In this document: piece by piece, positions 20,353 through 47,819 of the stretch
Position numbering within the stretch: the first letter of the stretch is position 1
Layout: each line of letters begins with the position of its first letter
NCBI GenBank assembly: GCA_002189035.1
Contig: CM007989.1
Location: 930,001-994,000 of the forward strand
DNA from: Utricularia gibba
Lineage: Eukaryota; Plantae; Magnoliophyta
Length of the DNA stretch: 64,000 bases
Direction: 5' to 3'
Translations under genes and position numbers: made by a program
The notes under the pieces: model-generated
What the model was told of the DNA's origin: nothing
Database searches by the model: none
Seen by the model: only the letters and a program-made list of their open reading frames with translations

Positions 20353-20523
20353 ACAAAGAAGCAAGGATGCTGAGGAACTTGTTATGTATTTTGAATTTAT
20401 GATTTAAATTATTTATAATAAAATCAATTTTGATATTATATGAATATAATAAATTTGATATTATAAGATTCGTTTTATAAAATATTATAAAAATTAATAA
20501 ATAAATTATATATTATAAAATTT

Positions 20524-22365
20524 ATTTTGGTATCAAAAAGGATATATTTCCATAATTAGTTCGTAAATTAAAACAATATTTATTTTATTTTTTTAATATC
20601 ATCTTATCTTACCTGCTGCAATTAATGATCGTATCTTATCTAATCCAAAGTAACTTTCCCGCCACTTTGAGCCTATTTTCCGTTCAATATCACTTTTCCC
20701 GCCCGCATCGTCCGTACAACACAGAAACGTATATATACCCCCTCTCTTTGGGTCGTAGTCCTCATTCGTCATCTTCCTGGTTTTGCACGCGACTCACAAA
20801 TCCATGGCTTCTCGAGCTCTCGCTTCCGTCATTTGTCTACTGGGATTGGTGACGTTGTCGGCCGTGGAGGCTACGGCGACGTGTTCGTCGCAGAAATTCG
20901 CCGGCAACATGAAGAAGTACTCTTTCTGCAACGATCTCCCGGTTCTCGGTTCCACCATTCACTGGTCCTACCGTCCCAACGAGGCCCTCCTCTCTCTCGC
21001 CTTCTCCGCACGTCAACCGAGGCCGGAGGGCTGGGTTTCGTGGGCTATCAACCCCTCTGGCGGCGGCATGGCCGGCGCGCAGGCCCTGCTTTCTTACGGC
21101 GACGCCGATGGGAAGATGAGCGTCAAGACGTATAATATTACTGGGTACGCTCCTCCCGTGACGGAGTCTGCGGTGTGGTACCGCGTGGAGGAGGCGTCGG
21201 CCGAGTACTCCGATGGGTTCATGAGGATCTTCGCCACCCTGGTTCTCCCCGAGAAAGGATTAACCGCCATCAACCATGTGTGGCAAGTCGGGCCCTCCGT
21301 CACCGATGGGAAACCAAACGCGCATGAATTCAAGCCGGAGAATCTCAAGGCTCGCGGCAAACTTGATCTATTGAAGGGGCAACTCATCCACCAAACCACC
21401 AACTTGGATTCAATAGCCAGAATGAAGAACGTAAGCGATCCATTTCTGCAACAGTTTTATAAGATCAATCACTCCTATGAACATAACGCTTCTTTTACAG
21501 ATTCATGGCGTTCTGAACGTGGTAAGCTGGGGGGTCATGTTCCCCCTCGGAGTCGTCATGGCCAGATACGTGAAGGCGTTCCCCGGAGCCGACCCCGCTT
21601 GGTTTTACCTGCACGTGTCCTGTCAGACCGCCGCGTACATCATCGGCGTAGCCGGTTGGGGCACCGGAATGAAGCTCAGCTCTCGATCAAAGGGAGTCAC
21701 ACATTCACTCCATCGGAATCTTGGAGTCGCCCTCTTCTCCTTAGCCACGCTGCAGGTACTCTCATCCTCCTCCCTCCTGGTTGCTTCATTCAGGATGACA
21801 CTGTGTTTGGCCTGCAGATGTTTGCGATGTTCTTGAGGCCGAAGAAGGACAACAAATACCGCATCTACTGGGACATCTACCACCGCAGCGTCGGGTACTC
21901 GGTCATCGTCATGGGAATACTCAATGTTTTCAAGGGGTTCGAGATCCTGAAACCCGATCGCCACTGGAGAATTGCGTATATCGGAGTGATCAGCTCGCTC
22001 GGCGGCGTGGCGGTTGTGTTGGAGATCATCACCTGGATTCTCTACCTACGAAAAAGCAAGAACAGCACCGGCACCGATCCATCGAATTGTTAAGAGTTGC
22101 AGAGCATGACAGGATGATGCTGGGCACCCTTCCCTGAGAACCGTTATTTATCAATCTTTGTTCGAATTTCAGACATTTCTTGCAGCTTTTTATCATTATC
22201 ATTGGAGTGTGAAAAATAAAAGGAGAAAAACTGCTTCTCCACAAATATTTCTGTTCATGACATGACAAATATTTGACACTCAGTTGGAAAAAGAATACAC
22301 TTTTCAGCATTTACAACAATCTGAATCTGAGTATCATGGAGATAGAGCGAGCTCTGCCCACGCAA
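20524..22365 (+). repeat. Source copy of a 1.8 kb inverted segmental duplication
   Basis: Aligns by eye to the reverse complement of 37549-39369, from ATTTTGGTA(T/A)CAAAAAGGATATATTTCC to GCTCTGCCCA(C/T)GCAA, with scattered substitutions and small indels. Confidence 0.95.
20804..22093 (+). CDS. Cytochrome b561 and DOMON domain protein (CYBDOM), copy 1, 3 exons
   Basis: Signal peptide; DOMON motifs [33 protein letters not shown]; b561 His ligands IHGVLN, FYLHVS, SLHRNLG, IYHRSVG. Introns at 21431-21500 and 21756-21817. Confidence 0.93.
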
Positions 22366-37104: not shown

Positions 37105-37490
37105 GAATCCGCCGCAATTCCACCCGGCGCCGGGAGGCTTTCTTCTGACACAACCGGAAAGACACTGAACTTTGAACCAGTAAAAACCAAGCTTCTACCT
37201 TTTTCTTTTCTTCTGAGTTTTGCCTCCGAGAAGATAAACAATAAATAGATGAATATTGTTTATTTTATTCCGTGAGAGTGAAGACTCGAAATTCAGAAAG
37301 AATGGCAGGAATGTAATGAGATAGTTCTGCAGTTTTTACTAGTTGCGTGTGGAACTCCTGATCTTCTCCGATGTGTCGAATATGCATACGGCTGGCCCGT
37401 TTACAGACGGCCATGAACTCCAGTAGCGCCGTGATCAACTACCGCAGTTTGTGAGACAGCAGCCTGGTTACAGGTTCGCCGGAGAGGAAC
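37105..37490. repeat. Direct repeat B (SPIKE1 last exon plus 3' flank), partner of about 40325-40710
   Basis: Shared blocks GCTTTCTTCTGACACAACCGGA, CTGAGTTTTGCCTCCGAGAAGATAA, TTCAGAAAGAATGGCAGGA and TTTACAGACGGCCATGAACTCCAGTAGCGCC occur in the same orientation in both copies. Confidence 0.9.
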
Positions 37491-37548
37491 AACGCGCAGA
37501 CACTGAAGCCGCGCGACCAAGGATTGATATGAAGAATCGAAAACTCTA
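37285..37548 (-). pseudogene. SPK1: SPIKE1 (DOCK ROP-GEF) C-terminal pseudogene fragment
   Basis: Reads SVCALFLSGEPVTRLLSHKLR*LITALLEFMAVCKRASRMHIRHIGEDQEFHTQLVKTAELSHYIPAILSEF, matching the recalled SPK1 C-terminus. In-frame TAG at 37439-37441. Confidence 0.85.
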
Positions 37549-39369
37549 GTTGCATGGGCAGAGCTTGCTCTATCTCCATGATACTCAGATTCAGACTGTT
37601 GTAAATGCTGAAAAGTGTATTCTATTTCCAACTGAGTGTCAAATATCTGTCGTGTCATGAACATAAATATTTGTGGAGAAGCAGTTTTTCTCCTTTTTCT
37701 TTTCACACTCCAATGATAAAAGCTATAAGAAATGTCTGAAATTCGAACAAAGATTGATAAATAACGGTTCTCAGGGAAAGGTGCCCAGCATCATCCTGCC
37801 ATGCTCTGCAACTCTAACAATTCGATGGATCGGTGCCGGTGGTGTTCTTGCTTTTTCGTAGGTAGAGAATCCAGGTGATGATCTCCAACACAACCGCCAC
37901 GCCGCCGAGCGAGCTGATCACTCCGATGTACGCAATTCTCCAGTGGCGATCGGGCTTCAGGATCTCGAACCCCTTGAACACATTGAGTATTCCCATGACG
38001 ATGACCGAGTACCCGACGCTGCGGTGGTAGATGTCCCAGTAGATGCGGTATTTGTTGTCCTTCTTCGGCCTCAAGAACATCGCAAACATCTGCAGGCCAA
38101 ACACAGTGTCATCCTGAATGAAGCAACCAGGAGGGAGGAGGATGAGAGTACCTGCAGCGTGGCTAAGGAGAAGAGTGCGATTCCAAGATTCCGATGGAGT
38201 GAATGGGCGACTCCCTTTGACCGAGAGCCCAGCTTCATTCCGGTGCCCCATCCCGCTACGCTGATGATGTACGCGGCGGTCTGACAGGACACGTGCAGGT
38301 AAAACCAAGCGGGGTCGGCTCCGGGGAACGCCTTCACGTATCTGGCCATGACGACTCCGAGGGGGAACATGACCCCCAGCTTACCACGTTCAGAACGCCA
38401 TGAATCTGTAAAAGAAGCGTTATGTTCATAGGAGTGATTGATCTTATAAAACAATTGCAGAAATGGATCGCTTACGTTCTTCATTCTGCTTATTGAATCC
38501 AAGTTGGTGGTTTGGTGGATGAGTTGTCCCTTCAACAGGTCAAGTTTGCCGCGAGCCTTGAGATTCTCCAGCTTGAACTCATGCGCGTTGGGTTTCCCAT
38601 CGGTGACGGAGGGCCCGACTTGCCACACATGGTTGATGGCGGTTAATCCTTTCTCGGGGAGAACCAGGGTGGCGAAGATCCTCATGAACCCATCGGAGTA
38701 CTCGGCCGACGCCTCATCCACGCGGTACCACACCGCAGACTCCGTCACGGGAGGAGCATACCCAGTAATATTATACGTCTTGACGCTCATCTTCCCATCG
38801 GCGTCGCCGTAAGAAAGCAGGGCCTGCGCGCCGGCCATGCCGCCACCAGAGGGGTTGATGGCCCACGAAACCCAGCCCTCCGGCCTCGGTTGACGTGCGG
38901 AGAAGGCGACGGGGAGGAGGGCCTCGTTGGGACGGTAGGACCAGTGAATGGTGGAACCGAGAACCGGGAGATCGTTGCAGAAAGAGTACTTCTTCATGTT
39001 GCCGGCGAATTTCTGCGACGAACACGTCGCCGTCGCCTCCACGGCCGACAACGTCACCAATCCCAGTAGACAAATGACGGAAGCAAGAACTCGAGAAGCC
39101 ATGGATTTGTGAGTCGCGTGCAAAACCAGGAAGATGACGAATGAGGACTGCGACCCAAAGAGGGGGTATATATACGTTTCTGTGTTGTACGGACGATGCG
39201 GGCGGGAAAAGTGATATTGAACGGAAAATAGGCTCAAAATGGCGGGAAAGTTACTTTGGATTAGATAAGTAAGATCATTAATTTTAGCCGGTAAGATGAT
39301 ATTAAAAAAATAAAATAAATAATGTTTTAATTTACTAGTTATGGAAATATATCCTTTTTGTTACCAAAA
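37549..39369 (-). repeat. Inverted duplicate of 20524-22365 (CYBDOM gene, its proximal promoter and the last codons plus 3' UTR of the LRR-RLK)
   Basis: Near-identical reverse complement; includes GCATGGGCAGAGCTTGCTCTATCTCCATGA (AWAELALSP* of the RLK) at about 37552-37581. Confidence 0.95.
37814..39102 (-). CDS. CYBDOM copy 2; one apparent 1-nt frameshift
   Basis: Same exon structure and all heme ligands as copy 1, with nine amino-acid differences seen. It has G5 at 38373-38377 where copy 1 has G6 (21529-21534). Confidence 0.8.
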
Positions 39370-39480
39370 TTGATTATAGAGATAAGAAATAAGATAATTT
39401 AAAAATATGCATTTAATTTAATATTCAGCGCGGAAGGAAATAGAAGGGGCATGGGCGAAGCTGCTCACACCGGCGGTACG

Positions 39481-40250: not shown

Positions 40251-40521
40251 GGGCGGCGATGAGCAGTAGTAGACTTACGCCATTTATCGCAGATTTATGG
40301 CTGGGATTGCTGCTTCCTTCCAAGACCGCCCGCAATCCGGGTTCCGGGCGCCGGCACGCTTTCTTCTGACACAACCGGATACACACTGAATTCGAACCAG
40401 TAAAAACCCTCAACCAGAAGCTTCTAGCTTTTTCTTTTCTACTGAGTTTTGCCTCCGAGAAGATAACCAATAAATAAATAAATAAATATTGTTTATTTAT
40501 TTATTCCATGAGCGCGAAGGA

Positions 40522-42493
40522 TCGAAGTTCAGAAAGAATGGCAGGAGTGTAATGAGACATTTGTGCAGTTTTTACTAGCTGCGTGTGGAACTCCTGATCT
40601 TCTTCTCCGATGAGTGCCCGTTTACAGACGGCCATGAACTCCAGTAGCGCCGCGATCAACTGTTACAGTTCCCGAGACCGCAGCCTGGTTGCGGTTCGCC
40701 GGAGAGGAATGCAACCGCCACTTGAACTGCAACGGAACCTTGAAGTATCTTCTGAAGTCTCTGGAGTGGGGGAGCTGATCGCTTTCTGAGCTACGGTGTT
40801 CCTCGATATCATTTCTCAGTGCAGCCGTCCGGGTTTCGATCATTCCGATCGCATTCTCCACCTGGAAAACTCTAGTGATTCATATTTGGGAAAGTGCCCT
40901 CCACTTCCACTGATCCTCTAACCCACCCAGAGTTTTTCAAGTTTTAGTGAAAGGAGAATCGAATAGGAACCTGTCGAAAACTCGGGCACGAATGCTCCCT
41001 GTAGAAAGCAATAATATCCTTTCTCCTGCTTCCCAGGTCCTCCTCCTCCATCTCTGGATCAACTGCAGTGATCTGCAGGTAACAAACTTCCGGCTGCAGT
41101 TCATCGGCATTCACCTGCAAGTTTCTGATTAAATGAATACAGATAAGTGCAATCAGGACCCTGTTATGCAGGCATGAAATGATAACACTCTATGTAACAT
41201 CCTGAAATGGATTCCCTGGAAAGGCATTATCGTAAAGGACAATGAAAGTTAACTATCACCTCAAAATGAATAAGCCATTCCTCCAAGAGCTTGAAAAATA
41301 ATCTGGAACTAGCAGTACTTTGCTGCCATGCTTTGATAAGTGATGCATCATCCAATTCGAGCATGGCTTGCAAAACAGCAATGAGCACCTCATGCTTCTC
41401 ACTTGAGCTTAAATTGTAGAAAACAGGACTTTCATCTAGAATCTGTGAGAATGTAAAACCTGGTAAATGCAGGAGAAAGATGCAGGTCCAAAAGCACTTG
41501 TAACTCATCATAGTAAAAATAATAGTCTGTCTGATCTCGAACCAACAACTTGATAAAATAGGATGGAAGCATGAGTGCAGTTAGAAAAGATGTCCAGTAT
41601 CTAATTAATCATACAAACCTGGCCAATATAAGGGAAAGTATAGTTGTGCTGTACAAAGTTTGTCTTCTGGCTTCTGGTAGCCTACATCAAATTCATGTTT
41701 GCACAATAAGACCACAGCATTCTTGCTGCCTAATGGATAAACCAAGAAAAAAGAATTTCCATACGTAATGCTTTAGATTTCCAGAATTGTGTGTATCAAA
41801 GAAATCTGATTCTGGAAAATGGCTTCCAGATGTACTTTGATGCTGCTCATTGACTGATCCTTGGGCCTTAACCCTCCCATTGTTAGAAAGTTCCATTTCT
41901 GAAAAAAATATACATGCAGATATCCACATGGAATGATTTAGATTCCCAGAACTAAAATTTAACAATTAGAAACTAAAGATTTGCAATACATGTATAAACT
42001 CTCAGCGTCTGGTCACACTATGCAATACATGTATAGAATTTTGTGACAATACTCGCATGTAAATGACAAGTTTCTATGCATGAAGAAAAGTATGATGCAA
42101 TGGAGGTTAAATTCTATAATCACCTGTACACTACTTGCCAACAAGGGAATCAGTATTCGGCCCCTCAAATAGCTGCTTGTTAAAGCAAACAGGGCCAATG
42201 CTTTCATCACGTCCGTACTCGTTTTTATCTTTATTCCTATCGGCTCCATAGGACTGTACAAGCTCATTCAAATGGGGTCATTGCTCCAAGGTTCCGTCCG
42301 GCTTAGTCGTTCACATAAGAGGAATACTCATTGTACAGAGTACACTATCTAAAGGGAGAAAAATCCCCTGACATTTTTTGCTAAAAACACCATGAAGTAA
42401 ACTTACAACTGGGTTCAATCGATTGCAACTAGAATACGACTGGCGAGGAATCCTCGGGAACCGAAGCCCACTATTCGATGAAGTTTCCATCAC
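40522..42493 (-). pseudogene. SPK1: Unprocessed, massively deleted SPIKE1 (DOCK-family ROP-GEF) pseudogene
   Basis: Colinear relics: MMETSSNSGLRFPRIPRQS | DGTLEQ*PHLNELVQSY...FEGPNTD (TGA 42278-42280) | ILDESPVFYNL...LDDASLIKAWQQS...RLFFKLLEE | VNADELQPEVCYLQITAVD...RARVFDRFLFDSPFTK (2-nt loss) | VENAIGMIETRTAALRN...LLEFMAVCKRA...SHYTPAILSEL (TAA 40663-40665). Introns are retained. Confidence 0.92.
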
Positions 42494-42680
42494 TCAACTG
42501 AACGCCAACCACCCTAAATAAAACCAGCTGAAAAATCAAAGAACACATTCCCAACACGGATCATAACCCCACCCAACTATTCGATGAAGTTTCCATCACT
42601 CAACTGAATGCCAACCACACTAAATAAAACCTGAAAATTAAAGAACAGATTCCCAACGAGAATCATAACCCCACCTAACT
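42470..42680. repeat. About 106-bp tandem duplication covering the SPK1 pseudogene start codon
   Basis: ACTATTCGATGAAGTTTCCATCACTCAACTGAA...CATAACCCCACC starts at 42470 and again at 42576. Confidence 0.9.
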
Positions 42681-43325
42681 ACCACAGCATAATCAATAAC
42701 CCGAAAAGCACACAGAAACAAACCCAACCATAAAAAATAAAGATCTGCAGTCGTCACCGAGGTAATCCACAAAACCCACTGCCCAACAACTCCAACTAAA
42801 GAGATGCTGCCCCTTCACGAGGCGTCTACTCCCAAAATGTGCGGCCTTGAATGGAGCAGGTAGTCGCCAAAGAGCTCCTCATGGAAATGGATTTAAGCCA
42901 TAAAAGAACACCAATCAACTAGAAGCTCGCTCACCCCACTGCAACTGCAACCTTTTGCACGCTTTTTGAGTGGAAAGAGACGACCGTTGGCGTGTCATAA
43001 CTCTACCCAGCTTTTTAAATTTACTAAAATGTTGTAATTAATTAGCAATTACCGTTGATGCCTTTTTTTAATTCCCCAAACCAAACTTAAATAAACAAGT
43101 AAATGATACAATACTGACAAAACCCGATTCAACCCTCCCGCGTAAATTCAAGATAGGCACATGGTACGGGGTACTATTGACATTCGGGTAAAATGTTTTA
43201 CAAGAAGAAAACAACACACGGTCCCCAAGAATCGAATCCACTGGAAAGCAAAGTTTTGGGAAGAAGGTAATTGAAGAGAATGAGGAGGAGGAGGACCAGT
43301 AGAATGGCGACAAGTGTGTCGGTGT

Positions 43326-44622
43326 CTAAACCTTGGCAAGATGTTGGGTAATAAACTCCTCCATTTCCTTGATGAGGTGACCCGACTCCGGCAGCTGGGG
43401 GAACACGTAGAAGGCGTGGACCATCTTCGGGTACTCCAGCAGGCGCACCTCCTTGCCGGAGTCCCTGAGCCACTCGTAGTACCTTCTCTGCCAGTCCTTG
43501 AGCGTGTCGAACCCTCCGATCACCACGGCGGTCGGCGGGAAGTTGGGCAGCCGCGCGATGTCGGCGGCTCTGGGTCCGCTCACGTTGATCGACTCGTGGT
43601 CGCGGTCGGAATCCGGGATCAACGCCCGCCACATCCAGTCGGTTTTGTCGATTGTGACCAGGACGTCCACCTTCGCGAGCTCCAATTCAGATCGGGTTCT
43701 CTCTTCCCCGCCGAAGAAGGGCTGTATCGCAATCAGCCCCCGGACCTGTGCATGAAATAATATTTGTTTTTTTAAAAGGTCACATATATTAATAATTATA
43801 TTAAAAATATTTTATGTTAATTGAAATCACGTGACAGACAGGGCGTGTGAGACATCAGTATCATGTCCATTTAGTGAGTAATACGAAGGCGACATATCCC
43901 TGCAATGATTATAATATACTCTAAAAATCATGGATTGTGCTTTTTGGAAAATAAAATAATTTAAAAATATATTCTAAATTTGATGTCTACTGTAATTCCA
44001 GATTTAGAAACTAATGAAGATGAAAAGAGGGATTATGTGGGATTGCCTGTAAGCGGGAGAAGTCAGAGGACTCGCAGAAACGTATCGCCACGTGGTGCGC
44101 GAGGTTGGCGCCGGCGCTGTCTCCGGCGAGAAAGCAGTTCGACAAATCTGCCTTTTCCGGCAGAATGTCACTCCGCTGATCGAGATACCTCAGGACGTCC
44201 ATTCCGTCTTCGAACTGCGCCGGATATTTGTGCTCCGGCGCAAGGCGGTAGTTAACGGACACCACAATCGCGGGGATCTTGCGAGCGAAGCGACGGCAGA
44301 CGTTGTCGTAGTGCCTAAAATCGGCGGACAGGTACACGAATCCCCCGCCGTGGAAGAACACCAGCACGGGAAGGCGTTCGCGATCCGCCGCGGTAGGGAC
44401 GAAGATTCTGAACCACAGTTTCCGCGCAGCATCGACGGTGAAATCGGCGGTCCTGACGCCCTTCCGAGGCCTGGCCGACGGCCCCGAGAGCATACAGCAA
44501 TCGAACAAGTGGTATAATCCGCGATTCACAGTGCCGTCGCGGCGGCAAGCGGCGTCCGCGAGACTTCTGGAGAGAAAGTAAGAGACGCGAGTAACGACGG
44601 GGAGACGCGGCTTCTCTGCCAT
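43326..44622 (-). CDS. Carboxylesterase (CXE18-like alpha/beta hydrolase), 2 exons
   Basis: FHGGGF, SVNYRLAPEH, AGDSAGAN, IQPFFGGEERT, GGFD, MVHAF (full triad). Exon 1 44622-44047 (576 nt) and exon 2 43745-43326 (420 nt) join in phase 0 through a GC-AG intron. Confidence 0.92.
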
Positions 44623-45665: not shown

Positions 45666-47819
45666 TCAGCGGCGGATTCTGCGGCTTCGGGTCTCCACGT
45701 CGTCCTCCCGTGAAGCTTGACGAGCGTGTACACAGCGGCCCCGACGACGGCTCCCAGTGTGGGTGCGATGAAGTATATCCAGAGGGACTTGTAGTTGCCG
45801 GCTGCGATGGCCGGTCCCAGAGTGCGTACAGGGTTCATGGATGCACCAGTGGAAGTGCTGCACGAATTATACAGGGTTTTGTTAGGATAATACAGATTGC
45901 TGGATTGTGTATTGTGGTGTTGTGAATGGTGAGTGTGTTTACCCGGCAACAAGGATGTTGAGCAGAACAGTGGCCCCAACAGCGATTCCGGCGAGTTCTC
46001 CGACCTGAACAACGGCAAACCCCAGGCGGGTGAATGAATAGGCGATTAGTCCAACAGCGGGGGGTGGGTGATGAGCTTACCGCTCGAGTATCGGTGGCGA
46101 CGGCGGTGACGACGAAGAGGAGATTGAAAGTGATGAGGAACTCAAGCGCGAAAGCTTGGCCAGTGCTGACGCTTGGGACCGTCACGCCGCCGCCCATGAA
46201 TGGGTGGAAGCAGCCCTTGAGTGCGAAGGAGGCGCAGATGGAGGCGGAAACTTGGGCGGCGATGTACGCCGGAACATGGACCCACGGGAAGTGGCGGAGT
46301 ACGGCGAATGCAATGGTAAGAGACGGGTTGAGATGCGCCCCAGAAATGTGGCCAGTTGAAAGTATGACAATCATCACCGCGAGCCCGGCGCATGCTGCAT
46401 TCCCGATCAGAGTCTCCGCGCCGTTGTACTTCTGGTTCACGATAGGTCCCGCGGTGGCGCCGAAGATCAAAATGAACGTGCCCACGAACTCCGCTCCAAG
46501 CTGCAATTCAAACAACGCAATAAAAATCAATTCTTTCGCCCCCAAATCCACATTTGCTCTCATTAGATTTTTAAAAACCCTAAATTTAATACAAAAAAAT
46601 ATATTTAATTTATTCATCAAATTAATAACGACGACCAAGTCAATCCCCATCCCGTGTAGACAAGACAAGGGTCACGCCTTTTCCTGTCCGTTTTCACATT
46701 GAAGGAAAATTCCTAGACACCACTGAACATCTGAGCTGTCTCCATCCACAATGCCGTTATATTACAGAATCACCCCTCCACTCTTTCCATTTCGACCATA
46801 ATGCCCCTCTAATTTCCGACAAAAAAAATAACATAAAGTAAACCTTCACATCCTACTCTAAGGCATTGTATTGTAGCGTTTGTACAAAGGAACCGAAAGT
46901 TACACTAACATTTTAATACTCCCCTAGGGGAACATTATGACGCCATGCATGTGCCCCTCCCACATAACCAATAATACCCAAAATTTAAAAATAATATTAT
47001 GAATTATATCGAAATTATCATCAAATTCTTTTTTATTTCACTTTCATCAAAGAGTTGTTACTAGTAATGAAAATGAGATAAATGAAGTCACATATTAAAC
47101 ACATCAACTATGAAATTTTATATTAAAAAAAGGTATTAATAAACATGGGATTAATAGGAGCCGTAAACAAAGGGACTCATCAAATCATGTCGTGCTGTGA
47201 GGGGGGTGTTCCAAAATGGGCCCCGCAAGAGCATCTCACCCACCCCACTTGCACCATCCGCGGTTCACTGTGCTTCCATTGACTTTTTTTTTAAATAATT
47301 TATAAATGAACACTAATTTAGTTGTGCATGTAGTAGCATTTTTTGGAAAATATTTAAAATTAAAATATGTTTAATATGCAAATTTAAACATAAATGGTAT
47401 TTAAGTAAAATTAATTTAATGTAAAGCTTTTTACAGAGCAATCATACTAAATAAAATCAATTATAAACAATGCATTAGGTAAATGAATCTAAAGCACTTT
47501 TGCTTTTCTTCAGGAGAATCGCATTAAAATGACGTATTTTACCAGAATTAATAACATTATTAGTGTGAAAAAAAAGCATCGAAAATTCCGACTGAAGAGG
47601 AGGAGGAGGACGCACCTTGCGGGTGAGAGAAATGTCGGGCACCGCGAAGTCGGTGAGGCAGGTATGCGGCGTCCCCCACGACGGCGCGTCCACAGGCAGG
47701 CACTGGCACCGCGGCATCGACTTCCGTTCGTACGACATCGAATCGACGCTCGCCCGCCCCATCATCAGCGGGGCCGGCGTCCCGGGGGTCGTCGGTGTCG
47801 CCGCCTCGAAATCCCCCAT
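45666..47819 (-). CDS. NIP5;1: NIP II aquaporin / boric acid channel NIP5;1-like, 4 exons; apparent 1-nt frameshift near the C-terminus
   Basis: [22 protein letters not shown] | [26 protein letters not shown] (NPS), [13 protein letters not shown] (NPV). Adding one G at 45707-45709 gives the family-like end [15 protein letters not shown]. Confidence 0.93.

Follow-up and report, generated by a model that had tools for sequence, protein, structure and literature searches.

The question raised by this locus is whether some 2 kb of its minus strand are the remains of SPIKE1 (SPK1), and by what route the gene was brought to this state. Plants have one ROP exchange factor of the DOCK family, SPIKE1, and it regulates the shape of their cells. 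A first-pass annotation of the window, by which we mean the whole 64 kb stretch of Utricularia gibba DNA analysed here, had described a miniature in which the N-terminus, one central exon and the DHR2 C-terminus of SPK1 lie in order within 2 kb, with nonsense codons, frameshifts and the splice sites of the gene.

To establish the identity of the sequence, we compared a full-length plant SPK1 of 1847 amino acids (P0021) with the 64 kb window using TBLASTN. The matches are colinear and on the minus strand, running from 42490 to 40525 (Table 1), with E-values of 3e-4 for a weak match to exon 3 and of 1e-16 to 1e-47 for the remainder; the colinearity that had been expected of such a search is therefore present in both order and strand. 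SPK1 peptides were already recognisable when the minus strand from 40300 to 42700 was translated in three frames. When the 61-residue stop-free exon at 41260-41442 (minus strand) was used as a phmmer query against 1.84 billion representative proteins, 38 matches were returned, and all 38 are SPK1 exon fragments or SPK1 proteins, P0021 among them. Comparison with Pfam placed lobe B of the DHR-2 domain above the curated cut-off at 40947-41189 (E = 2.8e-8), while the matches to lobe C were weak (E = 0.012 and 0.028) and lobe A was absent from the relic by both Pfam and TBLASTN with P0021. All of these searches were run exon by exon and by reference. The homology to SPK1 is far beyond chance, and its significance and colinearity mark the sequence as derived from SPK1.

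Table 1. TBLASTN matches of P0021 and features of the SPK1 relics, with positions counted from the first letter of the window.
Feature	Positions	Strand	Remarks
TBLASTN, P0021 aa 1-79	42490-42149	-	intron 1 read through
TBLASTN, P0021 aa 82-127	41902-41765	-	E 3e-4
TBLASTN, P0021 aa 951-979	41715-41629	-	
TBLASTN, P0021 aa 982-1043	41445-41260	-	
TBLASTN, P0021 aa 1607-1780	41138-40692	-	
TBLASTN, P0021 aa 1781-1847	40692-40525	-	
Tandem duplication, two copies	42459-42681	-	42459-42579 versus 42565-42681, period ~106 nt, 86% identity
Exon 1 relic, aa 1-28	42407-42490	-	ends at ancestral donor GTAAGT, 42406-42401
Intron 1, 105 nt, GT..AG	42302-42406	-	ancestral position; Nyssa exon 1/2 boundary at same codons
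Exon 2 relic, aa 29-82	42139-42301	-	start and end codons match Nyssa
Intron 2, 240 nt	41899-42138	-	donor mutated to GCAAGT (42138); acceptor AG retained
Exon 3 relic, aa 82-125	41771-41898	-	35% identity to P0021, E 3e-4; order, frame and acceptor correct
Junction of large deletion A, 15 nt	41756-41770	-	
3' end of intron preceding aa-946 exon, 26 nt	41730-41755	-	pyrimidine tract and TAG; aligns to L007 and L006
Central exon a, aa 946-981	41619-41729	-	1-nt deletion and 1-nt insertion
Central intron, 176 nt, GT..AG	41443-41618	-	ancestral position
Central exon b, aa 982-1043	41260-41442	-	open; 71% identity to P0021
Stub, 120 nt	41140-41259	-	begins with ancestral GT donor, ends at deletion B junction
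3' part of large DHR-2 exon, aa ~1607-1762	40721-41139	-	deletions of 3, 2, 19, 28, 1 and 1 nt
Last-exon relic, aa ~1770-1847	40504-40720	-	1-, 18- and 15-nt deletions; TAA stop at 40665-40663
3' UTR and downstream sequence	40344-40503	-	common to second relic
Second relic of SPK1 3' end	37123-37504	-	last exon from ~nt 10, plus ~180 nt of 3' UTR

The relic was compared with functional SPIKE1, which we take to be Arabidopsis At4g16340 and its orthologues, a DOCK-C type ROP exchange factor (Qiu et al. 2002; Basu et al. 2008). The two are homologous over residues 1-125, 946-1043 and 1607-1847, and the relic shares the ancestral exon boundaries as well as pieces of two DHR-2 lobes, B and C. Unlike the functional gene, the relic has no open reading frame and lacks the DHR-1 (DOCK-C2) domain, the TPR-like region and lobe A, so that neither the complete DHR-2 domain of three lobes nor the DHR-1 domain in an unbroken frame that characterize a functional SPK1/DOCK member is found. 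Its reading frame meets a stop at codon 36 and is shifted several times, and DHR-1 is missing along with most of DHR-2, so that the relic can neither encode a protein nor act as an exchange factor; to judge from these lesions it is probably functionless.

The intact SPK1 loci available for comparison were those of Nyssa sinensis (L002, a gene of 56.7 kb) and Prunus persica (L012), together with a set of compact genomic contigs on which SPK1 exons are intact (L001 and L003-L011). These contigs are the closest genomic sequences to the relic; their identity to it is 78-83% over the central exons and 68-70% over the C-terminal ones, the relic introns not being alignable. They resemble each other in the way that species of one order do, and represent other plants, probably of the Lamiales, and not the same genus; the source of L003 and L004 is a herbal mixture, 59% of it Leonurus japonicus (PMC8416078). 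In L003, L007 and L008 the intact SPK1 is followed, tail to tail and within ~0.7 kb downstream, by a gene with a DUF1771 domain. This adjacency is kept between contigs that are only ~80% identical and is absent from the window.

At the N-terminal end a relic is present as had been claimed, but it comprises three exons with two introns. The GTAAGT at 42406 is indeed the donor of exon 1 and lies at the same codon as in Nyssa, and the relic of exon 3 ends at the Nyssa exon 3 boundary. In exon 2 a conserved tryptophan has become a TGA stop (42280-42278); this and the TAA in the last exon are the nonsense codons that the first-pass annotation had placed at 42278 and 40663, and both are real. The tandem duplication upstream spans the SPK1 5' leader and the first ~10 codons, giving two ATGGAAACTTCATCGAATAG starts, and its proximal copy holds the ATG at 42490. 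Tandem Repeats Finder, run at a score of 40, did not report this duplication, nor any other repeat of consequence for the relic.

The middle of the gene is reduced to two exons (residues 946-981 and 982-1043), not to the single central exon first described, while the order of the pieces and both termini are as had been stated. Since 26 nt of the intron upstream of the aa-946 exon follow soon after exon 3, deletion A removed codons ~126-945, corresponding by the TBLASTN matches and exon maps to roughly 18 exons in the Nyssa gene. The spacer left between exon 3 and central exon a is 41 nt, a residual 'intron' that is too short for plant splicing. Downstream of central exon b the homology resumes at 41139, inside the large exon of the parent (residues 1438-1765), which indicates that deletion B removed codons ~1044-1606; the donor of the interrupted intron stays but its acceptor is gone. 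The proposal that several large internal deletions took most of the gene thus stands, with two large and about ten small deletions now counted.

In the C-terminal part, a deletion has taken the last intron together with ~20 nt at the start of the exon that follows it, leaving a junction at 40721|40720. The sequence AGT(G), of 3-4 nt, is found at both breakpoints of this deletion in all three of the intact proxies compared (Nyssa, L003 and L007), which suggests that the deletion was microhomology-mediated. Deletion sizes and microhomology are based on orthologue proxies in place of the true parental sequence, and from these proxies microhomology at the small deletions is unreliable, and we give it for the last-intron junction alone. 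The ancestral stop codon has become CGA at 40524-40522, which lengthens the frame by seven codons. The intact plant SPK1 proteins examined all share the C-terminal end ...QLVNGFQSLTAELSHYIPAILSEL, and five of these residues are missing in the relic. Directly after the extended frame lies an AT-rich near-perfect palindrome at 40469-40505 (AATAAATAAATAAA / TTTATTTATTTATT), a degenerate version of which occurs at the same place in the second relic described below.

Two CAG|GTG motifs in this region, near 41115 and at 40862, had been read as splice signals. DNA alignment places both within the single large exon of intact SPK1 genes, where they are coding and align to Arg-Gln-Val and Ser-Pro-Val-Glu codons. 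The statement that the miniature keeps its splice sites consequently holds for the exon 1 donor, but not for the exon 2 donor, which is GC instead of GT, nor for these two motifs or the residual 41-nt 'intron'.

The retained exons carry a marked record of decay. The C-terminal exons of the relic show ten deletions (those of Table 1 and the intron-spanning one) and no insertions, and over all retained exons there are 11 deletions and one insertion; the frameshifts claimed at first reading are confirmed by this count and by the DNA alignments. Relic-specific substitutions number 29, 22 and 75 at codon positions 1, 2 and 3, compared with 8, 2 and 89 between intact genes (Fisher p = 1.9e-7). Such a pattern is consistent with a period of function and a later neutral one, and a simple two-phase estimate from the codon-position counts puts the change accumulated after the loss of constraint at ~0.075 substitutions per site, a value which is an upper bound if the working SPK1 of the lineage is itself fast-evolving. 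Disabling mutations and relaxed constraint are thus both present, as in a pseudogene.

In our view, with a probability of about 0.85, the locus is a non-processed (DNA-level) SPIKE1 pseudogene, a redundant full-length copy that was eroded by deletions. Introns 1 and 2 and the central intron have kept their positions, at codons matching Nyssa and contigs L001, L006 and L007, which argues for a copy made at the DNA level and not for a retrocopy, and both gene ends are retained with leader and 3' UTR. A retrocopy was considered since intron 3 and the last intron are absent, a feature that the relic shares with processed pseudogenes. It was rejected, as three ancestral introns are kept, the loss of the last intron also took adjoining exon sequence and was hence a genomic deletion, and no poly(A) tract follows the 3' end of the relic; the combination of absent introns, poly(A) tail and target-site duplication that marks a processed pseudogene is not what the relic shows. 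We picture a full-length, intron-bearing SPK1 copy that would have turned redundant and lost constraint, after which deletion A, deletion B and a third deletion, of the last intron and ~20 nt of exon, would have eaten the copy piecewise, with about ten deletions of 1-28 nt in the exons that remained.

The source of this copy is less certain. U. gibba has passed through three whole-genome duplications, with two-thirds of its syntenic genes back at single copy (PMC4972453), and its genome is marked by numerous microdeletions and a net loss of introns (Ibarra-Laclette et al. 2013, PMC4972453). In the light of this published fractionation a fractionating homeologue is the most natural reading, and we would put at roughly even odds that the copy stems from one of the genome doublings of the bladderwort lineage and is now being lost by fractionation. 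Its chief competitor as a source, and a serious one, is a DNA duplication on a smaller scale, segmental or transposed. No trace of the genes that flank intact SPK1 was detected by tblastx in the 64 kb window, whether those of Nyssa (LKR/SDH), of Prunus (FtsH-like, BMT5-like and USB1-like) or of L003/L007 (the DUF1771 gene), the comparators here being the SPK1 loci of other plants; synteny with these loci lends no support to an in-place homeologue. Like the fractionation pseudogenes of maize and U. gibba, the relic bears introns, has undergone multiple deletions with a strong bias towards deletion, shows microhomology at one of its junctions and lies between intact genes in a genome described as heavily fractionated. 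It differs from them in that two of its deletions are large, spanning hundreds of codons together with introns, and not short, and in that its homeology is presumed. A short-deletion mechanism of post-polyploid fractionation in maize was reportedly described by Woodhouse et al. in 2010. We found no literature that treats SPIKE1/SPK1 together with Utricularia.

A second, smaller relic in the window bears on the history of the first. This copy of the SPK1 3' end at 37123-37504 is 81% identical to 40344-40709 and lies as a direct, not an inverted, repeat of it. Both show the 15-nt deletion and both have lost the stop codon; the second relic differs from the first in having its own nonsense codon and in retaining two stretches missing there, the beginning of the last exon and the 18-nt segment. 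The differences between them fall evenly on the three codon positions (8, 7 and 5 sites), and from this flat pattern we infer that the two relics have evolved neutrally ever since their split. The interval that separates them contains two genes, one with a DOG1 domain and one of the DUF568/CYBDOM type. The segment with the CYBDOM gene (37550-39378) is an inverted duplicate, 1.85 kb long and 95.7% identical, of 20516-22365, 17 kb away. This level of identity makes CYBDOM a younger insertion than the relic split, so that the segment appears to have been inserted between the relics, or copied from there, after they diverged. Before that insertion only ~1 kb, containing the DOG1-like gene, would have separated the relics; the second relic now lies directly downstream of the CYBDOM gene. 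On the other side of the first relic, the carboxylesterase (Abhydrolase_3) gene at 43326-44622 looks intact, with one intron of ~270 nt, which indicates that the relic adjoins at least one working gene. A gene with a strong Pfam match to aquaporins (MIP) lies at 45835-46668.

Taken from the divergence levels, the order of events may have been as follows. Constraint would have been lost first (~0.075 substitutions per site), and the SPK1 3' end would next have been duplicated to 37123-37504 (~0.05 per branch). Further deletions in the first relic would have followed this duplication, and the CYBDOM copy would have been inserted between the relics last (~0.02 per branch).

The reading that competes best with a redundant copy is that the relic is the only SPK1 locus, and that the sole DOCK-type ROP activator of plants has disappeared from the lineage altogether. 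This activator feeds the SCAR/WAVE-ARP2/3 cell-shape pathway. If this reading were true, it would mean the unexpected loss of a highly conserved and normally single-copy regulator of cell shape, which could relate to the rootless, submerged and simplified body plan of the bladderwort, and a rootless aquatic plant might tolerate the loss of SPK1. An intact SPK1 of the same genus was not found in the protein collections with the 61-residue central exon, full-length SPK1 or the large exon of L007 as query, a weak point in its favour as the same collections do not cover the proteins of this genome (none of ten window ORFs was present there by exact sequence). Against it, eudicot SPK1 proteins are 85-92% identical and the gene is preserved in every one of the 120 matches listed, which implies strong constraint, and the core genes of U. 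gibba return to single copy and do not vanish (PMC4972453). An ancestral single locus would also be expected to have flanking genes in common with intact SPK1 loci, and with the three comparators it has none. We consider the loss of SPK1 from the lineage unlikely.

A further possibility is that the pieces never decayed in place, and that they form a patchwork taken from a working SPK1 by a transposon (Pack-MULE, Helitron or CACTA) or as filler during break repair. The region is evidently prone to rearrangement, given the inverted CYBDOM copy and the duplicated SPK1 3' end, and synteny with intact SPK1 loci is lacking. As in the captures made by Pack-MULEs and Helitrons, the relic brings exonic and intronic pieces of a cellular gene together in a short mosaic. 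In contrast to these captures, however, all of its pieces come from one donor gene, are colinear and in one orientation, and include the true 5' and 3' ends with leader and 3' UTR, and the small deletions and substitutions speak of long local decay. No bounding terminal inverted repeats, Helitron ends or other transposon hallmarks were found between 36000 and 47000, and in place of multiple copies the window contains one other copy, the 3' relic. An origin by capture or as repair filler is thus very unlikely.

It had also been suggested that the stump might be retained for its RNA, as a spliced lncRNA or siRNA source acting on a working SPK1. In favour of this, the stump retains its leader region and 3' UTR as well as three introns of the GT/GC..AG type. 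What is known of the sequence does not favour it: the flat substitutions between the relics and the frequent deletions indicate neutrality, no exact match to an intact SPK1 orthologue exceeds 20 nt, the region holds no inverted-repeat structure (the relics being direct repeats) and no Rfam family, one residual 'intron' is 41 nt long, and the deletion B donor is without an acceptor. We regard the proposal as highly improbable. Finally, the collapse of a working gene by mis-joined reads merits almost no credence, as the retained exons are 17-30% diverged at the DNA level from intact orthologues and their stops, frameshifts and flat substitution pattern are impossible from mis-assembly.

Read as a redundant copy that decayed where it stood, the locus reveals no new mechanism and belongs, as an ordinary case, to a known class. 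It was described at the outset as a snapshot of genome downsizing, and it does give a good picture of deletional decay. The duplicated piece of the relic serves as an internal outgroup, which lets the steps of erosion be ordered. The locus is thereby a clear and well-resolved case of a process known for small plant genomes, in which a spare copy is removed by numerous deletions that differ greatly in size.
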